The position numbers and the translations under genes were made by a program. Under the pieces are notes generated by a model. That model saw only the letters and a list, made by a program, of their open reading frames with translations. It was not told the origin of the DNA and ran no database searches. A stretch of 64,000 bases of DNA, taken from Epithemia pelagica. Its lineage: Eukaryota; Protista; Bacillariophyta. Shown here in pieces: positions 1,116 to 22,100 of this stretch. Location: contig OX337239.1 of assembly GCA_946965045.2 (NCBI GenBank), positions 124,001 through 188,000 on the forward strand. Reading direction: 5' to 3'. Numbering within the stretch: position 1 is the stretch's first letter; every line of letters starts with the position of its first letter.

Positions 1116-1994
1116 TCATCATCAAGGGTGCCAGATCCTCGGGGGTTGACCAAAGACTGGAACCACATCACATTTGGTTGAGAAACGTTTTGGAGGAACC
1201 ATTGTTGCTTTGCTGCTGCCGCGAACACGTCTGGAAGGAACATAGGGGATAAATTTGATGACGAATGGAGTGACTGGCGGTAGTTTTGGTTGTCGAGTGT
1301 CGTCGTCGACGGTTGTTGGGGCCAAAAAGTGAGGGCGACAAGCAAATGGTGGGTTCTGAAGGAATAGTATCGATTTCCGATTCCAACTCGGTAGTGAGGT
1401 CCAAAGGAATTGCTGATGATGAAAGAGGTTTGTATCACGAGGACCATGAGGCCACAGACACAAGGTCTTCAGCATACCACATAATAACAACCGGAGTACG
1501 GTGGACTGAACAGGGAAACGTTCGCATGGGAGTGTGTTTGACTGTCTGCAATGCCGCAGTGAACCAGTCGGTGCGTCGTCAACGAATCGATCCACTGCGT
1601 CCGGTTGGGAAAAAAAGGAGCCAAGAATTGCCAAAAGAGAGAGCGGGTAACTTTTGAGTGGCCCACGTTACAAGAATCATTCGACAGGCGAACGAACGTA
1701 CAAGACGTTAAACAAAACGGTCCTTCAATAATTATTCTTGAAGCCCAGACTATCGCATACCGATGCAGCGCACGCCGGGGATCAATTTAGGCGGAGGATC
1801 CTCACAATTTTGGCCGGTCTTCACAAGACCACCCAATCCGTATTGTTTTCGCGAGATCGAGAAGAAGTTTGTTCTTCAAATCTCTTTTACCCTAGAGTCC
1901 GCCCCATCTATTTGCACCGTAGAACGAGTTTGTAGAACACGTGAGGAGTAAGAGTCAGCGACGCTCTTATCGTGGAGTCTTGCTCCTGAAGATC

Positions 1995-3221
1995 ATGGTC
2001 AATGATTTTTCAAACTTTCGATACGTTCGATGGGAATATTTGGACCAAGGAGTGCGGTTTGGCGATGGTCGGACCATGAAAAAATCGTTCCCACACTACC
2101 TTTGTCCGGTGGAGAAGAAAAGTCGGCTTGTGTATATTTCTCATAGAAACTGGACTCAAATTCCAGGACGAGCAGATCCAGAAAAGGATGCCTTTGTCGA
2201 GTTTACCGCGGTGGCATCGAGACTCCGGACAAGGTTTCATGGATTTGTGCTGTGGGAAACCAATCTTTCGTACGGGGGCAAAATACCCGATGAAGATTCA
2301 TGGAAGCATTTTCGATTTGTGGTCAAGCATTGCTTTGTCTATTTGGCCTCTCCGTACGGAATCGTGCATGAGCGCTCTTGGCTCCGGTATGAGGCAGTTC
2401 GTGCTCTGATGTGTCAACGTTTGATTTTGAATCGAAATTCCAGAGACCTGGTGCAACGAATTCGAACTCGCCCGTCACTCAAACTCGTGGAAGAGTTTGT
2501 GAAGGATGCACATATCTGGTACCCTGAAGATCGAGAACTTCTCAATAAATTTCTCCATAAAGAATTCACACCCGAATCCTTCGCTTATGATTTCAAACTG
2601 ATCGAAATTGCTAAACAAATTCCTCTTGAAGTGAACGAGGTGACTGGTTGGAACAAAATTAAAGCAAAAGGTATCAAGGAACAAGATTTGAACAAGAAAC
2701 GAGTTCTCATGGTATCTCACAAATGGGAGACATTGGAACATCCGGATGATGATCAATCCAGCCAACTCAAAGAGATTGTCAAATATCTCAAGGACAAGAG
2801 GACAGAGTTTGACTATCTGTTTTATGACTCCAAATGCTTGGACCAATCTATGCCGACGGAATCCCTTATGCGAGTGAATCACTTGTTTGCCGAGTGTCCT
2901 TGTCTTTGTCTCACCAACGAACGATACCTCCAAAGCTCCTGGTGTCTCTTTGAGCTGTGCATAAACTCGTTGAACCGAGGGGATCCTGAAAAAGTTGGAA
3001 TTGTCGACCACCACATCTTCACTTGGTTGAAGGATGCTTGGTTGGTTCGCCAAATGGGGTACGCGCACACACTGGAAACATCGGTCGTAGTTTTGGACTT
3101 GCCCAAAGACAACCTTCACCTGAAATCACAAGTTAGAACACTCTTCTTGTCAGAATCCACAACCATGACCAACCGAAGTGATGAAACCATTATGCTTAAT
3201 CTTTTGGACAAGTTAATTTGA
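1995..3221 (+). CDS. Protein with two tandem HET/TIR-like domains (~408 aa, intronless)
   Basis: C-terminal domain has VSHKW..HPDD..QL..YLFYDSKCLDQ..YLQSSWCLFE, the SHxW/HPD/DxxCxxQ/WCxxE pattern of HET-type TIR-fold domains. N-terminal domain has parallel motifs YISHRNW..ADPE..ERSWLRYE. First ATG is at 1995. Confidence 0.75.
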   Translation: MVNDFSNFRYVRWEYLDQGVRFGDGRTMKKSFPHYLCPVEKKSRLVYISHRNWTQIPGRADPEKDAFVEFTAVASRLRTRFHGFVLWETNLSYGGKIPDEDSWKHFRFVVKHCFVYLASPYGIVHERSWLRYEAVRALMCQRLILNRNSRDLVQRIRTRPSLKLVEEFVKDAHIWYPEDRELLNKFLHKEFTPESFAYDFKLIEIAKQIPLEVNEVTGWNKIKAKGIKEQDLNKKRVLMVSHKWETLEHPDDDQSSQLKEIVKYLKDKRTEFDYLFYDSKCLDQSMPTESLMRVNHLFAECPCLCLTNERYLQSSWCLFELCINSLNRGDPEKVGIVDHHIFTWLKDAWLVRQMGYAHTLETSVVVLDLPKDNLHLKSQVRTLFLSESTTMTNRSDETIMLNLLDKLI

Positions 3222-3429: not shown

Positions 3430-3900
3430 AAATGGTTGGTGTTGCTCTCCAAGGCCCACTCTTTGAAATGGAAGGATTGAATTTTGTGAGAAGCTGGTGC
3501 TGCAGCATTACGGTTGTGGCTGCCTGTTGGGTTGGATTCGCACCCAAACTGGCCACCGCCGAGATGTGGTGAATCGACGTGGGTCGTTCTGTGGTCGTCC
3601 GTGTCAGGGCCCACTTCTTGGGTTCACCACCACCAACATCCTTTCTGTTACTACTACTTGTAGTACGGTCCAGGGATTCGGTACTTTGTCGTTCTCCTCC
3701 ACCAAAGCCACCCGAGAAGCGACGCTGAATGTGACGACGAAGGGGAACACCACCACCACTGGTCTGCTGGTTGTTCTGGTTCTGGGTCTGGGTGTTGCAA
3801 GATTTTGGAATGGGTGAAATCAGGGCCCATTTTTCTTCATCATCATCATCATCATCATCATCTTGCAGCGATAGCCCTTCCCAAATTCTTCACTGCTAGA
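3430..3900 (-). pseudogene. Inverted fragment paralogous to the N-terminal part of the 19122-22687 gene
   Basis: Reverse complement reads WALISPIPKSCN..LRRHIQRRFSGGFG..ESLDR, matching WALISPIPKACN..FRRRIQRRFSGGFG..ESLDR at ~19420-19590. Confidence 0.75.
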
Positions 3901-4046
3901 TTCTAAAGCTTTGTACACCACAATAACACGAGGCACACAAACCAATCACAACGTAATACTATCACCGTCGAGGTTCACGTCTCCTCACTGTTTCACGTCA
4001 TGATTCTGTCAACCTTACTAATACAACCGTAGGAATGGCTCGTGTG

Positions 4047-5741
4047 TCAAGAATGCCTCATCCTGGTGGGGGACTTTGAACCAGGATGATATAAAGAACA
4101 CGTCGTCCTTGTCCTCAAGTGATAATAGATGAGCGTGCACCACAATCGTTGCAAGTGTCGTGTGATTTGTGGAGTGTAATACAAGAGAGGGCAAGTGGTA
4201 GATTGGTTCTCGTCGTCCTCCTCCTTCCATTTAGTAGTACTAGCAAACCGTGCCAGACTGCTCCACGTCAAGGCCACGGACCTACCGATACAAGAGACTG
4301 TTTCGACCTTGGTCCGACCATCAAAGCCACCCACGACCAATACATGCCACTCCCAAATCACCCTGCGGCCATCGCCTTGTCGTTGTCGTTGTGGTGTTGG
4401 TGTGACAGTAGTGGGAGTGTTCGTAGAGTACCATGGCAAACACAAGACTCCACACGAGACGCGACGACCTTCTTCTTGTGCAAGACGAACCAATGGGGAT
4501 TTGCACCGACGTGGCACCACCACCATTCTTGTTGGGTCGCTAGTAGTACTAGTAGTAGTAGAAGAAGAAGGCACGAGATCCACCCCGATGCATTCCACCG
4601 AAAGGGTGACTTCTTGATTTTGATGGTTCCATCCTCCCACCACCCAAAAAAGTTGTTCATGTCTGGATGCTGGACGACCAGCAACAGCAGACTGTGGAGG
4701 AACGGCAATCAGACAGCAATGCGATCGTGCCTCAGACAAGACACTGTCTGTATGCAACTTCCAAGGAGTCTGGTGGTTGGCGTATGGTACTCGTAGGAGA
4801 TGAGAATCGTCCTCCTTCTTCTCACGGTCCTCCTTGTTGTTATGGCTGTCCAGCTGCCAGGTCCACGATTCGACCGTATCGTATTTGACACCTTCGGGGC
4901 CTTCCCCTCCCACCACCCATACCGTGATGGTTGGTATGTTGCTGTTAGAATCAATGGTAGTAGCAGCCGCCGCACAGGCATAGCGTGGCACGGTCAGGGG
5001 TGGTCCGGAACAAATGGTCATGTTCCAGGCAGCAGTGGTCCAAGTATCCAACAGATCCACACTGGACAATTCTCCTCGTGTTGAATGATAGCCGCCCATG
5101 ACTACAATATACCGATTGGCAAGGGACACGGCTGCACAGCCTTCGCGGGCACACGACAAGCGCACCGGCAGCACTTGCCAGTGATTGTTGTTGTTGTTGT
5201 TTGGTGGATTGGGATTCGTCAAGTCGGAGAGGGCAATGCGTTCGATCGAATCCAATTGGTGCTGTCCATTGTAGCCCGCAATGGCATACAAATCGGTGCC
5301 ACACACGACGGCCGCCAATTCATCGCGAAGACAAGTCATGGCCGGTCCATACTGCCAGGAATAACAAGAAGAAGAAGAAGACGACGATGAATCAAAAGAA
5401 GAAGAATCCTTTGAGTTGTGGTCGTCAGGTTCGTTGTACCACAACAGGAGAACAGCATTGGAGCGACCGGAAGGCGTACTTCCACCCAAAACGGCGGCCA
5501 GGCATGTCTTGTTGTTGTCCTTGTCGTTGTAGTCGTAAGGAAGCGCTACGAGAGCATGTCGAGAGCGTGGCCCACCCAACAAGGAGGGAGGAACAGGAGG
5601 CCGTTGGTTGCAAGTGTTGGCGTTGGAAAAATCGTTGGGATGGATCCAACACCAACCATTGCGAATCCAATATGAGAATGATTGCAATGGTTCGTCTAGA
5701 TTCCCATCATCACGGTCATTCGGATTGTAAACATCGTCCAT
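4047..5741 (-). CDS. Kelch-repeat protein with low-complexity insertions
   Basis: Repeated Kelch blades: LYAIAGYNG..LDSIER, REGCAAV..IVVMGGY..LSSVD, RYACAA..WVVGGEG, RSHCC..WVVGGWN, LVVGGFDG. The open frame extends to 5831 and the ATG is at 5741. Confidence 0.8.
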   Translation of the reverse strand: MDDVYNPNDRDDGNLDEPLQSFSYWIRNGWCWIHPNDFSNANTCNQRPPVPPSLLGGPRSRHALVALPYDYNDKDNNKTCLAAVLGGSTPSGRSNAVLLLWYNEPDDHNSKDSSSFDSSSSSSSSCYSWQYGPAMTCLRDELAAVVCGTDLYAIAGYNGQHQLDSIERIALSDLTNPNPPNNNNNNHWQVLPVRLSCAREGCAAVSLANRYIVVMGGYHSTRGELSSVDLLDTWTTAAWNMTICSGPPLTVPRYACAAAATTIDSNSNIPTITVWVVGGEGPEGVKYDTVESWTWQLDSHNNKEDREKKEDDSHLLRVPYANHQTPWKLHTDSVLSEARSHCCLIAVPPQSAVAGRPASRHEQLFWVVGGWNHQNQEVTLSVECIGVDLVPSSSTTTSTTSDPTRMVVVPRRCKSPLVRLAQEEGRRVSCGVLCLPWYSTNTPTTVTPTPQRQRQGDGRRVIWEWHVLVVGGFDGRTKVETVSCIGRSVALTWSSLARFASTTKWKEEDDENQSTTCPLLYYTPQITRHLQRLWCTLIYYHLRTRTTCSLYHPGSKSPTRMRHS

Positions 5742-6894
5742 TCTTTGTTCGTGGTGTGATGGTTTTTGGAGCTGGATCTTTTGGATCTTTTGGAGATGGA
5801 CCGAGTCACGCAAGACTTGGGCATGACCCAAATCACGACCAAAACGAGAGTTCAGTCACGGGGATCCAGTGAATCGTCTAGGAATGATTCCTCTAGCTAT
5901 CTAGCTAGGTAGGAATAGCTAGTAGGAGTAGGTACTACTCCTAGGCAGGTAGGAGTACATCTAACCGAAGAACCCAGCCAACCAAGCCAGCAATGCCGGT
6001 ATGGACGCCATGTTCCGTGTCACTGTCTGATCCGTCAACGACAAGGGACGACGGAGAAAAACTGCCGCCGTGGAGTCCTTTGACGTGGGCGGATCCGACC
6101 GTGACACTGCGGAGGATGGTGGTCTGTCGAGATGCTGGCTGTTGGTTTGTTGGTGTCTGTGTTGCAAAGAATAGTGTCGAGAGGTTGTGTTGGATCGACT
6201 GAAACGAAACAAAGCCACAGCGGCAATCACTATCCTACGACGATGAGTTTATCTTTCTTTTTGGCTCTGTTGGGGTGGTGCATGTCGAAGTGCGTCGAAT
6301 GGTTCGTTGGGGACGATGATGGACTCTGTGTGCATGTGTGTGTGGGTCGGCTTGGCTCGGACGGAATCCCTCCACACCGACGACATGCGGCACCAGGTAG
6401 TAGTAGTAGTACTGCGGACTGCGGAGCATGCCCACGATATATCCCACACACAGTCGCAGCCGCAGGAATGGTTCCAACTCCAACACCAGGCCCACCGAGA
6501 CGACGACAAGAGCCCGACAAGACGTAATGGTTGGATCGAACGTATCGATACCTCGAATGGTAGTCGCAAAACCTGAAACTCGTGTGCTAGGTACTACTAG
6601 TTTGTTCCGCATTCCTCTTTTTCTCTCTGTGTGTATTGTACTATTGTTTTGTCACCCATCGGTTGCCGGTTCCAAAATTCCAAGGCAAGGAGATTGGAAG
6701 CAAACCCATACACTATCACTCGTAGGAGGATGATTCGTAGTATTCTTATTATCAGTAGTATGGGTTAGGCGCAACAACAGCAATAGGCTTCATTGGGATA
6801 GTTTTCGCGGGTCATGATACCCGTTCGAATCTTGTCGTAGAACGAGCCATGCACGAGTCCCATACAAAAGAAGAAAAACAGGTGGGAGTGGCCA

Positions 6895-7560
6895 TCACTG
6901 TCGTGAACCCAAATCGAGCAAACTCCCACGACGTGATAGCAAATGGACGCCACAGGTTGGATGGAATTGAAGGACGCCCACAAGTCCCAACAAGGCAACG
7001 ACCACCTGTTGTGCAATAGGGCAACAACAAAAGGAACGCATCGACAAAAGCAATGCATCAAAGGTGAGAACAAGAGGTTGTGAGGACACGGGGCTGTTGG
7101 TTCTTTGATTCTTGTGGCGTACCTTGACCAAGTCCATGACAATCGGGTTCACGTATTGATGATCGTCTAGTAGGTTGTCGTTGTTGTCTTCATTCGTCGT
7201 AGTGTCTTTGTTCTTCCCTACCAACACGGATACCACGGGGATGAGGCCATCCAATAGATTCATGAGATTCATTACGATCAGCAGGATGCGGTCATCGCAA
7301 CACCATACACAATCACTGCTACTACTAGGATCCTCCTCAGGTTCTTCGTGAGGTTGCTGTGGTGTACTAGATGGTGTGGACGTGGGAGCCTCGTACTCGT
7401 CCTGGTTGTCCTCCAGTCCCTGCATGGCACCAGGGCTTTCCTCGTCGTCATGACCATGGCGGTGCGGATTGTTGTTGTTGTTGGTCGCGGTGGTGGTGGA
7501 GGAAGCCAAGAGAAAGCCAGTCTCTGGCTCGGGCGGTCCTTCCTTCCAGTTCATGTTGTT
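6895..7560 (-). pseudogene. Possible membrane-protein fragment
   Basis: Acidic N-terminal region, then hydrophobic segments (RILLIVMNL..LIPVV; VVVALLGLVGVL). Frame ends abruptly. No family recognised. Confidence 0.25.
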
Positions 7561-7749
7561 ACTTCGAGAGAGACGAATGATAAAAGAGAGAGAGAGAGAG
7601 AACAGAGACGAGACGACAATGGATTCTCCGCTCGATCTTTGTGAAAGAGTGGATACCATGAAAGATGGTTTGATTAAAAGAATAATGCCAGTCATTCGTC
7701 ATAAACACAGAAATACAAAAAAATTTAATAAATACAATGTCTAATATCC

Positions 7750-8460
7750 AGCAGTACGTTGTACGTTCCTGCTCGTTTCCCGAACCGTTCTCCGCCTTCT
7801 CCGATAATAGGGATTGATACAGTCGACGCCGATGTCGTATTTTGTGCGCCTTGACCGATGGAACCGCATCAATCAAGACGTGTTCCAATCCCATACTGTT
7901 GTCGCGTTCCATACGGTTTTGGTGACTCTGTACGGTTGGCAATCCTCCATTGTCGTGCGTCAAACGTCTTCACAGCACACACGTAATACGCCAGAGCCCA
8001 TGGAGGACCTTGAAGGACGGTAATTTGAATCGGTTCGGTTGAACACCCTTCATTGTTGTCGCCATAGTGTCTACACAGCACACACGGTACGCCAGATCCC
8101 ATGGATTTTGAAGGACGGTACTAGTCGTTCTCCGTATGGACGCGTGTGACAACGAGGAGAGGCTCTGGACCAACGGTTGTGCTCCTGGCATTGGGCAGCG
8201 GCGCGTTGATACGATCGACTTTCATATGATAGGCCAATGCGACAGGGTCTACTTTCCTTTGCGGACATTCCTGGCGACGGACTGTACCAACAGGTCCTGT
8301 ACATTTTCTCGTGTGTCAGGATGGGGATCCATCGAGCATTTCATTCCGAGCCATGTTCCATTGACCCGTCTTGGTCGGTGGATGGACCCAGGAATCCCAC
8401 CAAAACATGCCACTGGCGTATTTGGAACTTATTTTGAGACAGCTGTGGAAGACTACCCTT
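7750..8460 (-). pseudogene. Inverted, frameshifted copy of the C-terminal domain of the 19122-22687 gene
   Basis: MERDNSMGLEHVLIDAVPSVKA..RRRLYQ..GNEQER and STVLQNPW.LAYRVCC are near-identical to 21971-22687, but split across several frames. Confidence 0.85.
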
Positions 8461-19121: not shown

Positions 19122-22100
19122 TTGTGTGCACGGACTGGTGTCAAGAGTATGATTGTATTGCCCGATGCCAGTAGGATGGCGGGTTGTCGACTCTCCAAGA
19201 ACAGCCGCAAAACTCTCCTACTAGAGGACGACGACAAGGACAACGACGAGGACGAAGACTTGACGACCAGTTCCATCACCTTGGGTGATTCCTCCTTGAC
19301 TTGGGATGGTCGACGACCACGACGACAGGGTTCCTTTGAAAGTTTCAGCCACCCCAGTTCCAGTGCGGGGGGATCCTCACACTCGTTGCAAGAGCATCAA
19401 GACGATGGAGGAGACGAAGAAAAAGAATGGGCTCTGATTTCCCCCATTCCCAAAGCTTGCAACAACAATAACAAACAGAACAACCAGACCACGGGTGGTG
19501 GTGGTCCCTTTCGTCGTCGCATTCAGCGTCGCTTCTCAGGTGGCTTTGGTCGAGGAGGACGACAACGACGTGCCGAATCCCTGGACCGTCATGCCACCTC
19601 GGCGGCGGCGGCTAGTTCTGGTGGGAATCCCACCCAACACCAGGCCACAACAACCGTCATGCTGCACCAAGACAAGAACCAGCATCATAAGGTCACTACT
19701 ACTGGACCCGTTTGTCGTCGTCGACTGGACCACACAGCTGCTGCACCAGCCGTTGCGACCACGACTCCTCCCGCCCAACCAAGTCGTCCTCCTGGCAAAC
19801 TGGTCAAACGACATTCCTTTTCCGGATTTATCGACCTCATTGTACCTCCCAAGAAATCAATGGCATCCAGAGACGAGAATCATGCACGGGAGAGCAACTT
19901 TTCTCGTGGCAGAACAACAGCAACAACCACATCCATCCAAAATACAACATCAGGCCCAGCATCCAGAAAAGGAGGACGACGGGTTGTAACACGAAGGGCA
20001 TCGTTCACAAGTCCCACCAGTTCCCATCCAATGGAACCAACCAGCAAGAAGAATGGATCGAGTGTCGTTCCAAGAAGGACACGAACTCAAACTCCAGAAA
20101 GTATCCAGTCGCAGGAAACCAAAGCTCCAATACCATCCCAGCGACAGAGAGGGCGGCCGGCACGGAGGGCATCCTTTACCAGCGGCATGACGACGACAAC
20201 GATAACCACCACCACCACCATTGCAACGAAACAACAACCGCGACGACAACCCCTTCAAACAACAAAAGCGACCACTGCTCGAGGGACCCACCACCATGAT
20301 ACGAAAACTCCACTGCGACGGGGGAGCGGAGTAGTCATCCGGAGGAGGGCATCCTTTGGTGGAATGACCACGAGCAGCAACAAACAGCAACAATATCGAG
20401 ACCAAGAACCCAACACAAAATTGCCGACGCACAACCAACAACTTTTGTCACGGTCCAAGAAACATTTGAATACGGACAATCGTGTAGTAGAAACGTCGCA
20501 TTCGAAACTCAAAAAGCCTTGCCGCATGCTGCTTTCCACGACGCCATTCGCAGTTCCCAAAGTGGATAGTCCTCCCGTAGTGCCTTGTCGTCGTCCAATC
20601 GACCCTGTAGCAGAAGCAACGGACGCATACTGGGAGGAGCAACATCGACTCTATCAACAACTCTATCCCGAACAAGTGGAGCAACAAAAGGACACAACTT
20701 ACAGTCCAGCACGCACAGGAACCATGGCTCCCGGGGCATGGAAAGCTCAACAGAATCCACTGCCCATGAGCCAGTATCCGGAACCAGCACCGAAACAAGA
20801 ATCTTCTCGACCAGAGGATGGATTTTCCAACCGTGGCACACTCACGACACCACCATCTCGTCCACGCATGGCACGACGACGATCGGCTGGTACCATGGCT
20901 CCTGCAGCCTCCATTCCAATGCACCTTCTGCCCAGTATGGTGAACCATCAGCCGACAATGCCAAATGTGTGGTCGTGTCCCAAAAGTATGGACAATGCCC
21001 CCAAGATGCCCTTTCGAAATGGGCATGCCAAGAGCCACACGCTCCAAGCGGAACCATTGGCGGATCCCAATCTTTCAAAGGCTTCTTCTTCTCCTCCTCC
21101 TCGCAATAACACGGTATCGACAGGACTGGTCCATGGTACGAAATCCTTGCAAACCCCATACGTTGGAGTTGTAGAGCAGGATGCCGCGTCGTCCACGATT
21201 CTTTTGCTGACTCCTGAAACCACCAGCCACATTCGCGAGAGTATGAGCGACCCCAAACATTCGAACCCCTATCCTCGTCGTCTTCGTAGTGTCCAACGAC
21301 GGTTCTCCATGGACGCGGCCGCCATCACCACAACCCATACAACGACTCCTCGTTTGGTTCCCGTCGGGATGAATTCTTCGTTGGCAACCGAATCCGAGGT
21401 TCCATTGACCGAGTCCGCACAACCAGGATCAAACGTTACGTTGCCGCCACTGGATTCGAGCCAACGACAACGACGAGGATCGACGGGAACCTCTTCCCAT
21501 GACACACAAACAGAATCTCTCTTTGATTTCCGCGTTCTTGTAAAGGATGACGATGGTCTTGCCCATATCCAAAACAAGGAGTTTGGAAAAAAGAACATCA
21601 AGAATAATGAATCCACTAGTACAGCGAACAAAGAGACCATCCAACGTGATGCCGATACAAAGGCGGTTGTCAAGCCAACAAAAGAGTCGGATGACGACGA
21701 TACCACTGTGACATGGGCCATTCGACAAACTCACCCATGGGTGCAACGCCGAGCATCTCTGGGATCTGGAAGGGCGATACAAGAAGCAACAAACATGGCA
21801 GCCGGAACCAAAACGCCAGAAACCACAAAAAGCCATGAAGCATCAGCCAGCTACTATTCACCACGCCCACACCATTTGGTCCGACGAGAGGGTCCACGGG
21901 TCGTTTCTCGGACACCTCTGCAGCCTCACACAAGGCAGAATTCGGCACTGTTGGCACAGCGGACTCGTCCTTGTCACCAATGCTAGTCCTTCACAGTTGC
22001 CTCAAGACAAGTTCCAAATCTGCCAGTGGCATGTTGGTGGGTTCTTCGGTCCATCATCCACCGACCAAGACAGTTCACTGGAACATGGCTCGGAATGAAA

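Follow-up and report, generated by a model that had tools for sequence, protein, structure and literature searches.

Here we describe a gene for a tandem pair of domains, very probably members of the TIR/HET superfamily, in a 64,000-nucleotide stretch of the diatom Epithemia pelagica (GenBank assembly GCA_946965045.2, contig OX337239.1, positions 124,001 to 188,000 of the forward strand). This stretch, hereafter the window, is located 124-188 kb from one end of contig 13 in a eukaryotic assembly of 60.5 Mb and 23 contigs. An open frame runs unbroken from 1941 to 3221 on the plus strand, and the open reading frame (ORF) list and the sequence itself place its first ATG at 1995 and its stop codon at 3219-3221, giving a protein of 408 residues. 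The gene and the parts of its product are as follows.

1995-3221, plus strand: complete and apparently intronless gene of the tandem TIR/HET-like protein, 408 amino acids plus stop.
2100-2474, plus strand: core of the N-terminal, degenerate TIR/HET-like domain (N-domain), about residues 36-160.
2391-2393, plus strand: codon for E133, which is the Glu in the Trp-x3-Glu motif of the N-domain (RSWLRYE), placed by sequence and in-register alignment.
2475-2690, plus strand: predicted helical linker, about residues 161-232, from the secondary structure of the model.
2691-3053, plus strand: core of the C-terminal TIR/HET-like domain (C-domain), strand A to helix D, residues 233-353.
2952-2954, plus strand: codon for E320, which lies in predicted helix C (SSWCLFEL) and is the candidate catalytic Glu, placed by sequence, model and family alignment.
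3054-3218, plus strand: family-specific helical C-terminal extension with a T-N-x-x-D motif (T392, D396), placed by invariant columns, consensus and model helices.

A first-pass annotation of the window had read two successive domains from a set of short parallel motifs, all of which are present in the claimed order and spacing.

Residues 48-53, N-domain: ISHRNW.
Residues 59-62, N-domain: ADPE.
Residues 128-133, N-domain: SWLRYE.
Residues 240-244, C-domain: VSHKW.
Residues 249-252, C-domain: HPDD.
Residues 277-284, C-domain: YDSKCLDQ.
Residues 315-320, C-domain: SWCLFE.

In the structural models the entire 408 residues are accounted for by the two TIR/HET-like domains, the linker and the helical tail. 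Conservation of the linker is limited to the two-domain subfamily in the homologue alignment. A Pfam scan of the protein detected no NB-ARC, NACHT or repeat-sensor domain, and hence no NLR, STAND or sensor part, in keeping with the earlier statement that the pair is not fused to an NLR.

Comparison with relatives supports the integrity of the gene. Four homologues of 423-486 residues align with it over their full length without intron-scale gaps, and a second assembly (ENA ERZ21939226) carries an independent 408-residue gene call that is 99% identical. As far as can be judged from these alignments, the gene is intronless, as had been proposed. Between the two assemblies 13 of the 1,227 bases differ, accounting for six nonsynonymous and five synonymous codon changes, and the flanks are 95-98% identical. 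An intact call with so few changes indicates a genuine gene that two haplotypes or strains carry in intact form and that is not hypervariable; by the same comparison it is under constraint. It also lacks the low-complexity runs of its neighbors, as the first-pass annotation had observed; the neighbouring Kelch ORF (4047-5831, minus strand) has both poly-N and poly-S.

The two halves of the protein proved to be one type of domain. Pairwise BLASTP of the N-terminal half against the C-terminal half gave no significant match. With hhalign, the single N-terminal half matched a profile of the C-domain family at E 5e-5, and a 13-sequence N-domain profile matched the C-family profile with a probability of 99.3% (E 2.2e-20 over 134 columns), bringing Ser-His-x-Trp, the Asp-Pro motif and Arg-x-Trp-x3-Glu into register. 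Furthermore, the C-family hidden Markov model (HMM) matched the N-domains of relatives directly (P0005, 2.5e-13; P0016, 4e-11; P0011, 6e-8). The parallelism noted at first reading is thus far beyond chance. In a maximum-likelihood tree the N-domains separated from the C-domains; each group was a clade supported at 100/100, and the inner topologies of the two were congruent, a pattern that implies a single duplication predating the diversification of the subfamily. The branches of the N-domains were longer than those of the C-domains. As read from the tree and profiles, one old duplication within a diatom lineage produced both copies, of which the N-terminal one is the faster-evolving.

The residues retained by the two copies differ in a systematic way. 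A family alignment of 52 sequences contained eleven columns conserved at 90% or more. The family consensus begins with Val-Ser-His-Arg-Trp followed by Pro-Asp-Pro-x-Gly-x-Gln, continues in the middle with Phe-Tyr-Asp-Tyr-x-Cys-x-Pro-Gln and then Arg-Thr-x-x-Glu, and later has Tyr-x-x-Arg-x-Trp-Cys-x-Phe-Glu and, further on, Thr-Asn-x-x-Asp. The C-domain carries ten of the eleven near-invariant residues (S241, H242, W244, P250, D251, D278, Q284, L291, W316 and E320); C281 and C317 are additionally present, and S241, H242, W244, P250, D251, D278, C281, Q284, W316, C317 and E320 all lie within its core. In the predicted fold the Ser-His pair comes after strand A, and the Asp-x-x-Cys-x-x-Gln block is placed between strand B and helix B. 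The N-domain retains S49-H50, W53, R127, W129 and E133, and has W86, N89 and Y92 at the family Asp, Cys and Gln positions. Hence both halves keep the final Glu, as E133 and E320, and the N-terminal copy lacks the Asp-x-x-Cys motif, since W86 and N89 replace its Asp and Cys; both observations of the first-pass annotation were accurate. The same division was found across the two-domain subfamily: the complete residue set is retained in the C-domains, while in the N-domains Ser-His-x-Trp is mostly kept, Arg-x-Trp-x3-Glu is always kept, the Gln is lost in every member and the Asp is lost in many. This pattern indicates that the pairing of a preserved with a degenerate domain is a stable and old property of the subfamily.

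For assignment to a superfamily, relatives and models were more informative than the window protein by itself. Against the Pfam TIR models the window protein gave no match at E<=10 and reached the gathering score of neither PF01582 nor PF13676. Likewise, the HET model PF06985 gave none even at E<=10, below its 22.5-bit cut-off, and a PF06985 search of the whole genome found nothing. Two other matches, to the PADLOC model PDC-S06 (27 residues, E 0.001) and to DUF4998, were judged to be chance. Among the homologues, PF06985 matched 4 of 70 at a cut-off of E<=0.01, the best at 8.7e-7, and at the looser cut-off of E<=1 it matched 10 of 52; a close homologue, P0004, had a HET match of 13.6 bits (E 0.09) on the Asp-x-x-Cys-x-x-Gln block. 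HET was the sole Pfam family that recurred on the domain itself, with TIR_2 and TIR next; in the 52 relatives TIR_2 was matched twice (best 0.03) and TIR once (0.063). The strongest HET-positive homologue was not among the ten 'SY'-variant proteins scanned.

A search of all PDB sequences with the family profile returned 15 matches, 11 of which were TIR domains, including TRAM (E 0.008), TLR6 (E 0.024), TLR2/15 (E 0.1), TLR1 (E 0.4), RPPT-TIR (E 0.66) and RPP1 (E 1.4). These TIR matches cover helix B, strand C and helix C, including Trp-Cys-x-Phe-Glu. The W316-x3-E320 motif, conserved at 90% or more in the family, falls in a predicted helix (residues 116-129 of the C-domain model), and the HMM alignment sets it on the WCxF(E/Q) of TRAM helix C.

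Structural modeling pointed in the same direction. The AlphaFold2 model of the whole protein had a predicted local distance difference test (pLDDT) score of 63 and no significant Foldseek match. The C-domain modeled with the 52-sequence alignment reached a pLDDT of 90.9 and a predicted template modeling score (pTM) of 0.87, and showed an alternation of strands and helices followed by three extra helices. With this model almost all of the top ~45 Foldseek matches were TIR domains, the best being RPP1 (E 2.5e-3, probability 0.99), and further matches included RPPT, RPS4, RUN1, SPARTA, AbTir, SpbK and a SEFIR. The match spans strand A to helix D (residues 233-342), leaving the C-terminal helices with Thr-Asn-x-x-Asp outside. 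The predicted domain has the flavodoxin-like alpha/beta fold with a parallel sheet that characterizes TIR domains, so that the fold anticipated by the first-pass annotation is borne out for the C-terminal half at the level of the model, and we have high confidence in the prediction that the C-domain adopts a TIR-like alpha/beta fold. Its neighbors in the ESM Atlas were Pfam-less clusters from haptophytes, rotifers and ascomycetes, the rotifer cluster being auto-named 'heterokaryon incompatibility domain-containing'.

HET itself is a remote TIR homologue, and the similarity of the two fades after helix C (Dyrka 2014, PMC4986451). The ending of the TIR match before the family-specific C-terminal helices agrees with this. 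The same study reported HET homologues in stramenopiles, haptophytes, choanoflagellates, green algae and bryophytes (PMC4986451), and a functionally important Glu is reported to be common to HET and TIR (PMC9153377). HET has three conserved blocks that map to strand A, strand B and helix C of TIR (PMC4986451); the C-domain has all of them in order, as VSHKW, FYDSKCLDQ and SSWCLFE, and the N-domain retains blocks 1 and 3 only. The PDB sequence profile, the Pfam matches on homologues and structure searches with two aligners are independent of one another and agree in assigning the domain to the TIR superfamily, where its nearest named family is HET, and the HET/TIR-like identity first assigned to both halves was upheld.

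What such a protein might do can be approached through its relatives. We propose, with a probability of roughly 0.5, that it is a tandem TIR/HET pair in which the C-domain cleaves nucleotides and the N-domain serves as its built-in partner. The C-domain would probably be a TIR-type nucleotide-cleaving enzyme, most likely a glycohydrolase or cyclase of nicotinamide adenine dinucleotide (phosphate), NAD(P)+, acting through E320; this assignment follows from its best structural relatives, which cleave NAD. TIR enzymes are activated by TIR-TIR assembly, and filament and tetramer TIR entries were among the structural matches. Because TIR enzymes need such contacts for activity, the N-domain would probably act as a non-catalytic partner or brake, either a pseudo-dimer mate or an autoinhibitor. 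The output could be NAD depletion or a nucleotide signal leading to regulated cell death or defense. Enzymatic cleavage of NAD, taken as a claim of its own and by analogy, is tentative and somewhat short of an even chance. A role in defense or cell death is about as tentative, the evidence for it being circumstantial: fusions of homologues to Ank, LRR, TPR and GBP domains, a paralogue beside a Macro gene, and the location of the gene in a subtelomeric, Kelch-rich region.

Several observations weigh against this proposal. In the C-domain, Ser takes the place of the near-invariant Arg that precedes the Trp by two residues, a change shared with the nearest homologue, P0002, and a close fragment, P0015. 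Plant TIRs carry Ser at the equivalent place (SxWCLxEL), and for this reason the change need not inactivate the domain. The pairing of an active with a degenerate copy claimed at first reading therefore stands in so far as the C-terminal copy is well preserved and the N-terminal copy is degenerate, with the reservation that the former is not fully canonical. Also, the window protein itself had no significant match in sequence searches of Pfam, PADLOC or the PDB. The only TIRs to which E320 was aligned are those of the animal proteins TRAM and TLR, neither of them an NADase, and the non-enzymatic TIRs of TLRs also have Glu at this position. Finally, no enzymatic activity has been demonstrated for any HET domain (PMC10890737, PMC12881547): its killing mechanism was still described as unexplained in 2024 (PMC10890737), and a 2025 paper lists neither a biochemical activity nor a structure for it (PMC12881547). 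The first-pass annotation had treated HET domains as established TIR-related cell-death effectors. Remote TIR homology and cell death upon overexpression are indeed documented, and what goes beyond them is not supported by these sources (PMC10890737, PMC12881547).

One alternative is an adaptor or scaffold, TIR-like but not enzymatic, acting by homotypic assembly in the manner of MyD88, MAL and TRAM and recruiting other HET-like proteins. Homotypic assembly was the first role proposed for HET, and the alignment of E320 to adaptor and receptor TIRs fits it. We consider it unlikely, while deserving serious attention, in view of the conservation of Ser-His, Asp, Gln, Arg, Trp and Glu at 90% or more protist-wide, which is more typical of an active site, and of the top structural matches, which are NAD-cleaving TIRs.

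A rather improbable alternative keeps the fold and changes the chemistry: the domain would process nucleosides or nucleotides, and its role, whether in metabolism or in signaling, would be unrelated to cell death. It could be, for example, a 2-deoxyribosyltransferase-like or LOG/SLOG-like enzyme, a 2',3'-cNMP synthetase or an NAD-RNA decapping enzyme. The sequence-profile matches fall on TIR and not on nucleoside 2-deoxyribosyltransferase (NDT) or LOG proteins, HET is the recurrent Pfam family, and the fusion partners of the homologues are sensor-type repeats.

That the domain is no relative of TIR at all, its Rossmann-like three-layer fold and short motifs being convergent, draws on the fact that the TIR evidence for the window protein is all sub-threshold or only moderate; we regard it as very unlikely, as the PDB sequence profile, the Pfam matches on homologues and the two-aligner structure searches all point to TIR/HET.

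Within the proposal of a nucleotide-cleaving C-domain with a built-in partner, a more specific arrangement can be imagined, in which the tandem is a self-contained asymmetric TIR pseudo-dimer whose decayed N-domain replaces the second protomer that canonical TIR NADases have to recruit. We rate this as a long shot. A single polypeptide would then suffice to form or gate a composite active site, and no NLR, SAM or Argonaute scaffold would be involved. The N-domain has lost the Gln of its BB-loop-side block in the whole subfamily, and in this gene the Asp and Cys too, and it keeps Arg-x-Trp-x3-Glu; the trigger could be the neighboring variable Kelch proteins or a nucleotide ligand. If true, this would represent a diatom-specific form of control over a HET-type death enzyme.

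The distribution of the domain was determined by an exhaustive profile search over 1.84 billion representatives. It returned 1,523 proteins at E<=1e-3, including 290 at E<=1e-10. About a dozen of the 1,523 are two-domain relatives; the remainder match the C-domain core only. A word search with the family alignment yielded no further relatives. By this census the single domain occurs widely among protists, in a clade of no fewer than 1,523 clusters at 50% identity that is rarely reached by the Pfam HET model; one single-domain relative is in the haptophyte Chrysochromulina tobinii. The two-domain form is so far confined, among the sequences searched, to diatoms (Epithemia and metagenomes). The named two-domain relatives are KAL7578982 and KAL7578983 of Epithemia clementina, the others coming from metagenome and SRA assemblies. 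The consecutive locus tags of the former pair (ACA910_019029 and ACA910_019030, JBGMNV010000013.1) suggest adjacent genes, and one E. clementina relative has a 465-residue N-terminal extension with no Pfam match. Two metagenomic proteins of 949-981 residues, P0020 and P0162, have a HET/TIR-like domain, a guanylate-binding-protein GTPase and a second HET/TIR-like domain, and so present another pairing of two such domains, around an immunity-type GTPase.

The family profile identified five loci with the domain in the E. pelagica genome, the window gene included. The other four are listed here.

Contig 7: two-domain paralogue, 30% identical.
Contig 7: single-domain gene.
Contig 5: HET/TIR-like ORF abutting a Kelch ORF.
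Contig 10: single-domain gene directly upstream of a Macro-domain gene.

At the contig 10 locus (669000-678999) a 495-residue single-domain gene is accompanied by a same-strand Macro gene (PF01661, E 6e-8), the ORFs being 3995-5482 and 1817-2884 on the minus strand, and a Kelch-like ORF lies on the other side of the HET/TIR-like gene. A TIR-like gene beside a putative ADP-ribose-binding or -hydrolyzing module is suggestive of NAD-derived signaling. At the contig 5 locus (689000-698999) the HET/TIR-like ORF (4119-4877, plus strand) is without an in-frame Ser-His-Arg-Trp block, and just upstream of it there is a separate match interrupted by an in-frame TGA. The ORF abuts a same-strand Kelch-repeat ORF of 974 residues (4923-7847, plus strand), and could be either part of a HET-Kelch fusion joined by splicing or a copy in decay.

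The suggestion of the first-pass annotation that the gene was horizontally acquired was not supported: a recent origin from bacteria, viruses or fungi, which the lower guanine-plus-cytosine (GC) content of the gene (44%, against 48-54% in the neighboring long ORFs), the freedom from its neighbors' low-complexity runs and the position between 0.93-kb direct repeats could be taken to favor, is highly improbable given a third-position GC content (GC3) of 0.48, inside the neighbors' range of 0.48-0.65, an old two-domain paralogue at 30% identity on another contig, two-domain relatives in Epithemia and on eukaryote-type metagenome contigs, congruent N and C subtrees that imply a long vertical history, and the finding, with limited sensitivity, of no relative by motif patterns in IMG/VR and 185,579 prokaryotic species genomes.

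The surroundings of the tandem gene comprise the following features.

4047-5831, minus strand: Kelch-repeat gene, convergent neighbor (Pfam Kelch_1, E 1e-11), given as context only.
6727-7645, no strand assigned: downstream copy of a 0.93-kb direct repeat (929 bases aligned by self-BLAST at 96.9% identity).
65-993 bases before the window start on contig 13: upstream copy of the direct repeat.

Kelch genes are hugely expanded in this genome, with 2,579 first-look candidates, many of them in end-of-contig arrays, and 150 of 150 scored above the Pfam cut-off. The adjacency of the tandem gene to a Kelch gene may simply reflect this expansion. A conserved neighborhood was considered and rejected, as the genes around the relatives on longer diatom-type contigs are housekeeping genes. 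The direct repeats bracket the pair of HET-like and Kelch genes, an arrangement that could be a substrate for copy-number change. Each copy contains a 266-residue ORF with no Pfam match (downstream, 6895-7695, minus strand), and a weaker extension of the repeat links window positions 5980-6242 with the segment 1432-1719 bases upstream of the window at 79%. In ENA ERZ21939226 the downstream copy continues into sequence like that of the window start; a unit of ~7.7 kb may thus be tandemly duplicated in that assembly. Additionally, a 214-bp inverted repeat pair, 82% identical, occupies 3665-3871 and 19383-19589, with one arm just downstream of the gene, and is probably a dispersed repeat or an element like a miniature inverted-repeat transposable element (MITE).

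Diatom blooms are controlled by viruses, algicidal bacteria and parasites, and to our knowledge no cell-autonomous immune or cell-death effector of a diatom has been characterized. The existence of HET-like genes in stramenopiles was already outlined in 2014 (PMC4986451), and nothing specific on such genes in diatoms was found in the literature consulted. New here are the diatom-restricted tandem architecture with its systematically decayed first copy and the size of a protist clade that the Pfam HET model rarely reaches. As a small, apparently intronless protein combining a preserved with a decayed domain, the window protein is a convenient construct for a first biochemical test of HET-type NAD cleavage, and the same construct suits the study of a built-in pseudo-partner regulating a TIR enzyme. 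If the protein proved inactive, an adaptor role for the protist clade would be indicated instead.

Among known systems, the closest parallel is with the fungal HET domain (PF06985; HET-E, TOL, PIN-C, BH), which has its three conserved blocks in the order found in the protist domain. The first, after strand A, consists of a small residue, an aromatic residue or His, any residue and Trp; the second, after strand B, of an acidic residue, x-x-Cys and x-x-Gln; and the third, in helix C, of Arg/Ser-x-Trp-x3-Glu. Both also frequently stand alone or are fused to repeat sensors. Unlike fungal HET, the protist domain has Ser-His-Arg/Lys-Trp, where the fungal domain carries Ser-Tyr-x-Trp-Gly, together with a Pro-Asp-Pro motif and the T-N-x-x-D helical extension, and the window protein is a tandem duplicate within one polypeptide. 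Compared with the NAD-cleaving TIRs (SpbK, AbTir, SPARTA TIR-APAZ, RPP1/RUN1/RPPT and SARM1), sequence identity is 10-16%, and beyond helix D the protist domain has family-specific helices instead. The animal TIRs (TRAM, TLR1/2/6, MyD88, MAL) provide the best profile matches (E 0.008-0.4, over helix B, strand C and helix C); these adaptors and receptors transmit their signals through assembly and not through catalysis, and in TRAM the position of the Glu is occupied by Gln. Nucleoside 2-deoxyribosyltransferases and SLOG-type Rossmannoid domains give no signal with the sequence profile and have different conserved motifs. Lastly, the HET/TIR-like locus on contig 10 of the same genome has a single domain beside a Macro gene, in contrast to the sensor-less tandem encoded in the window.
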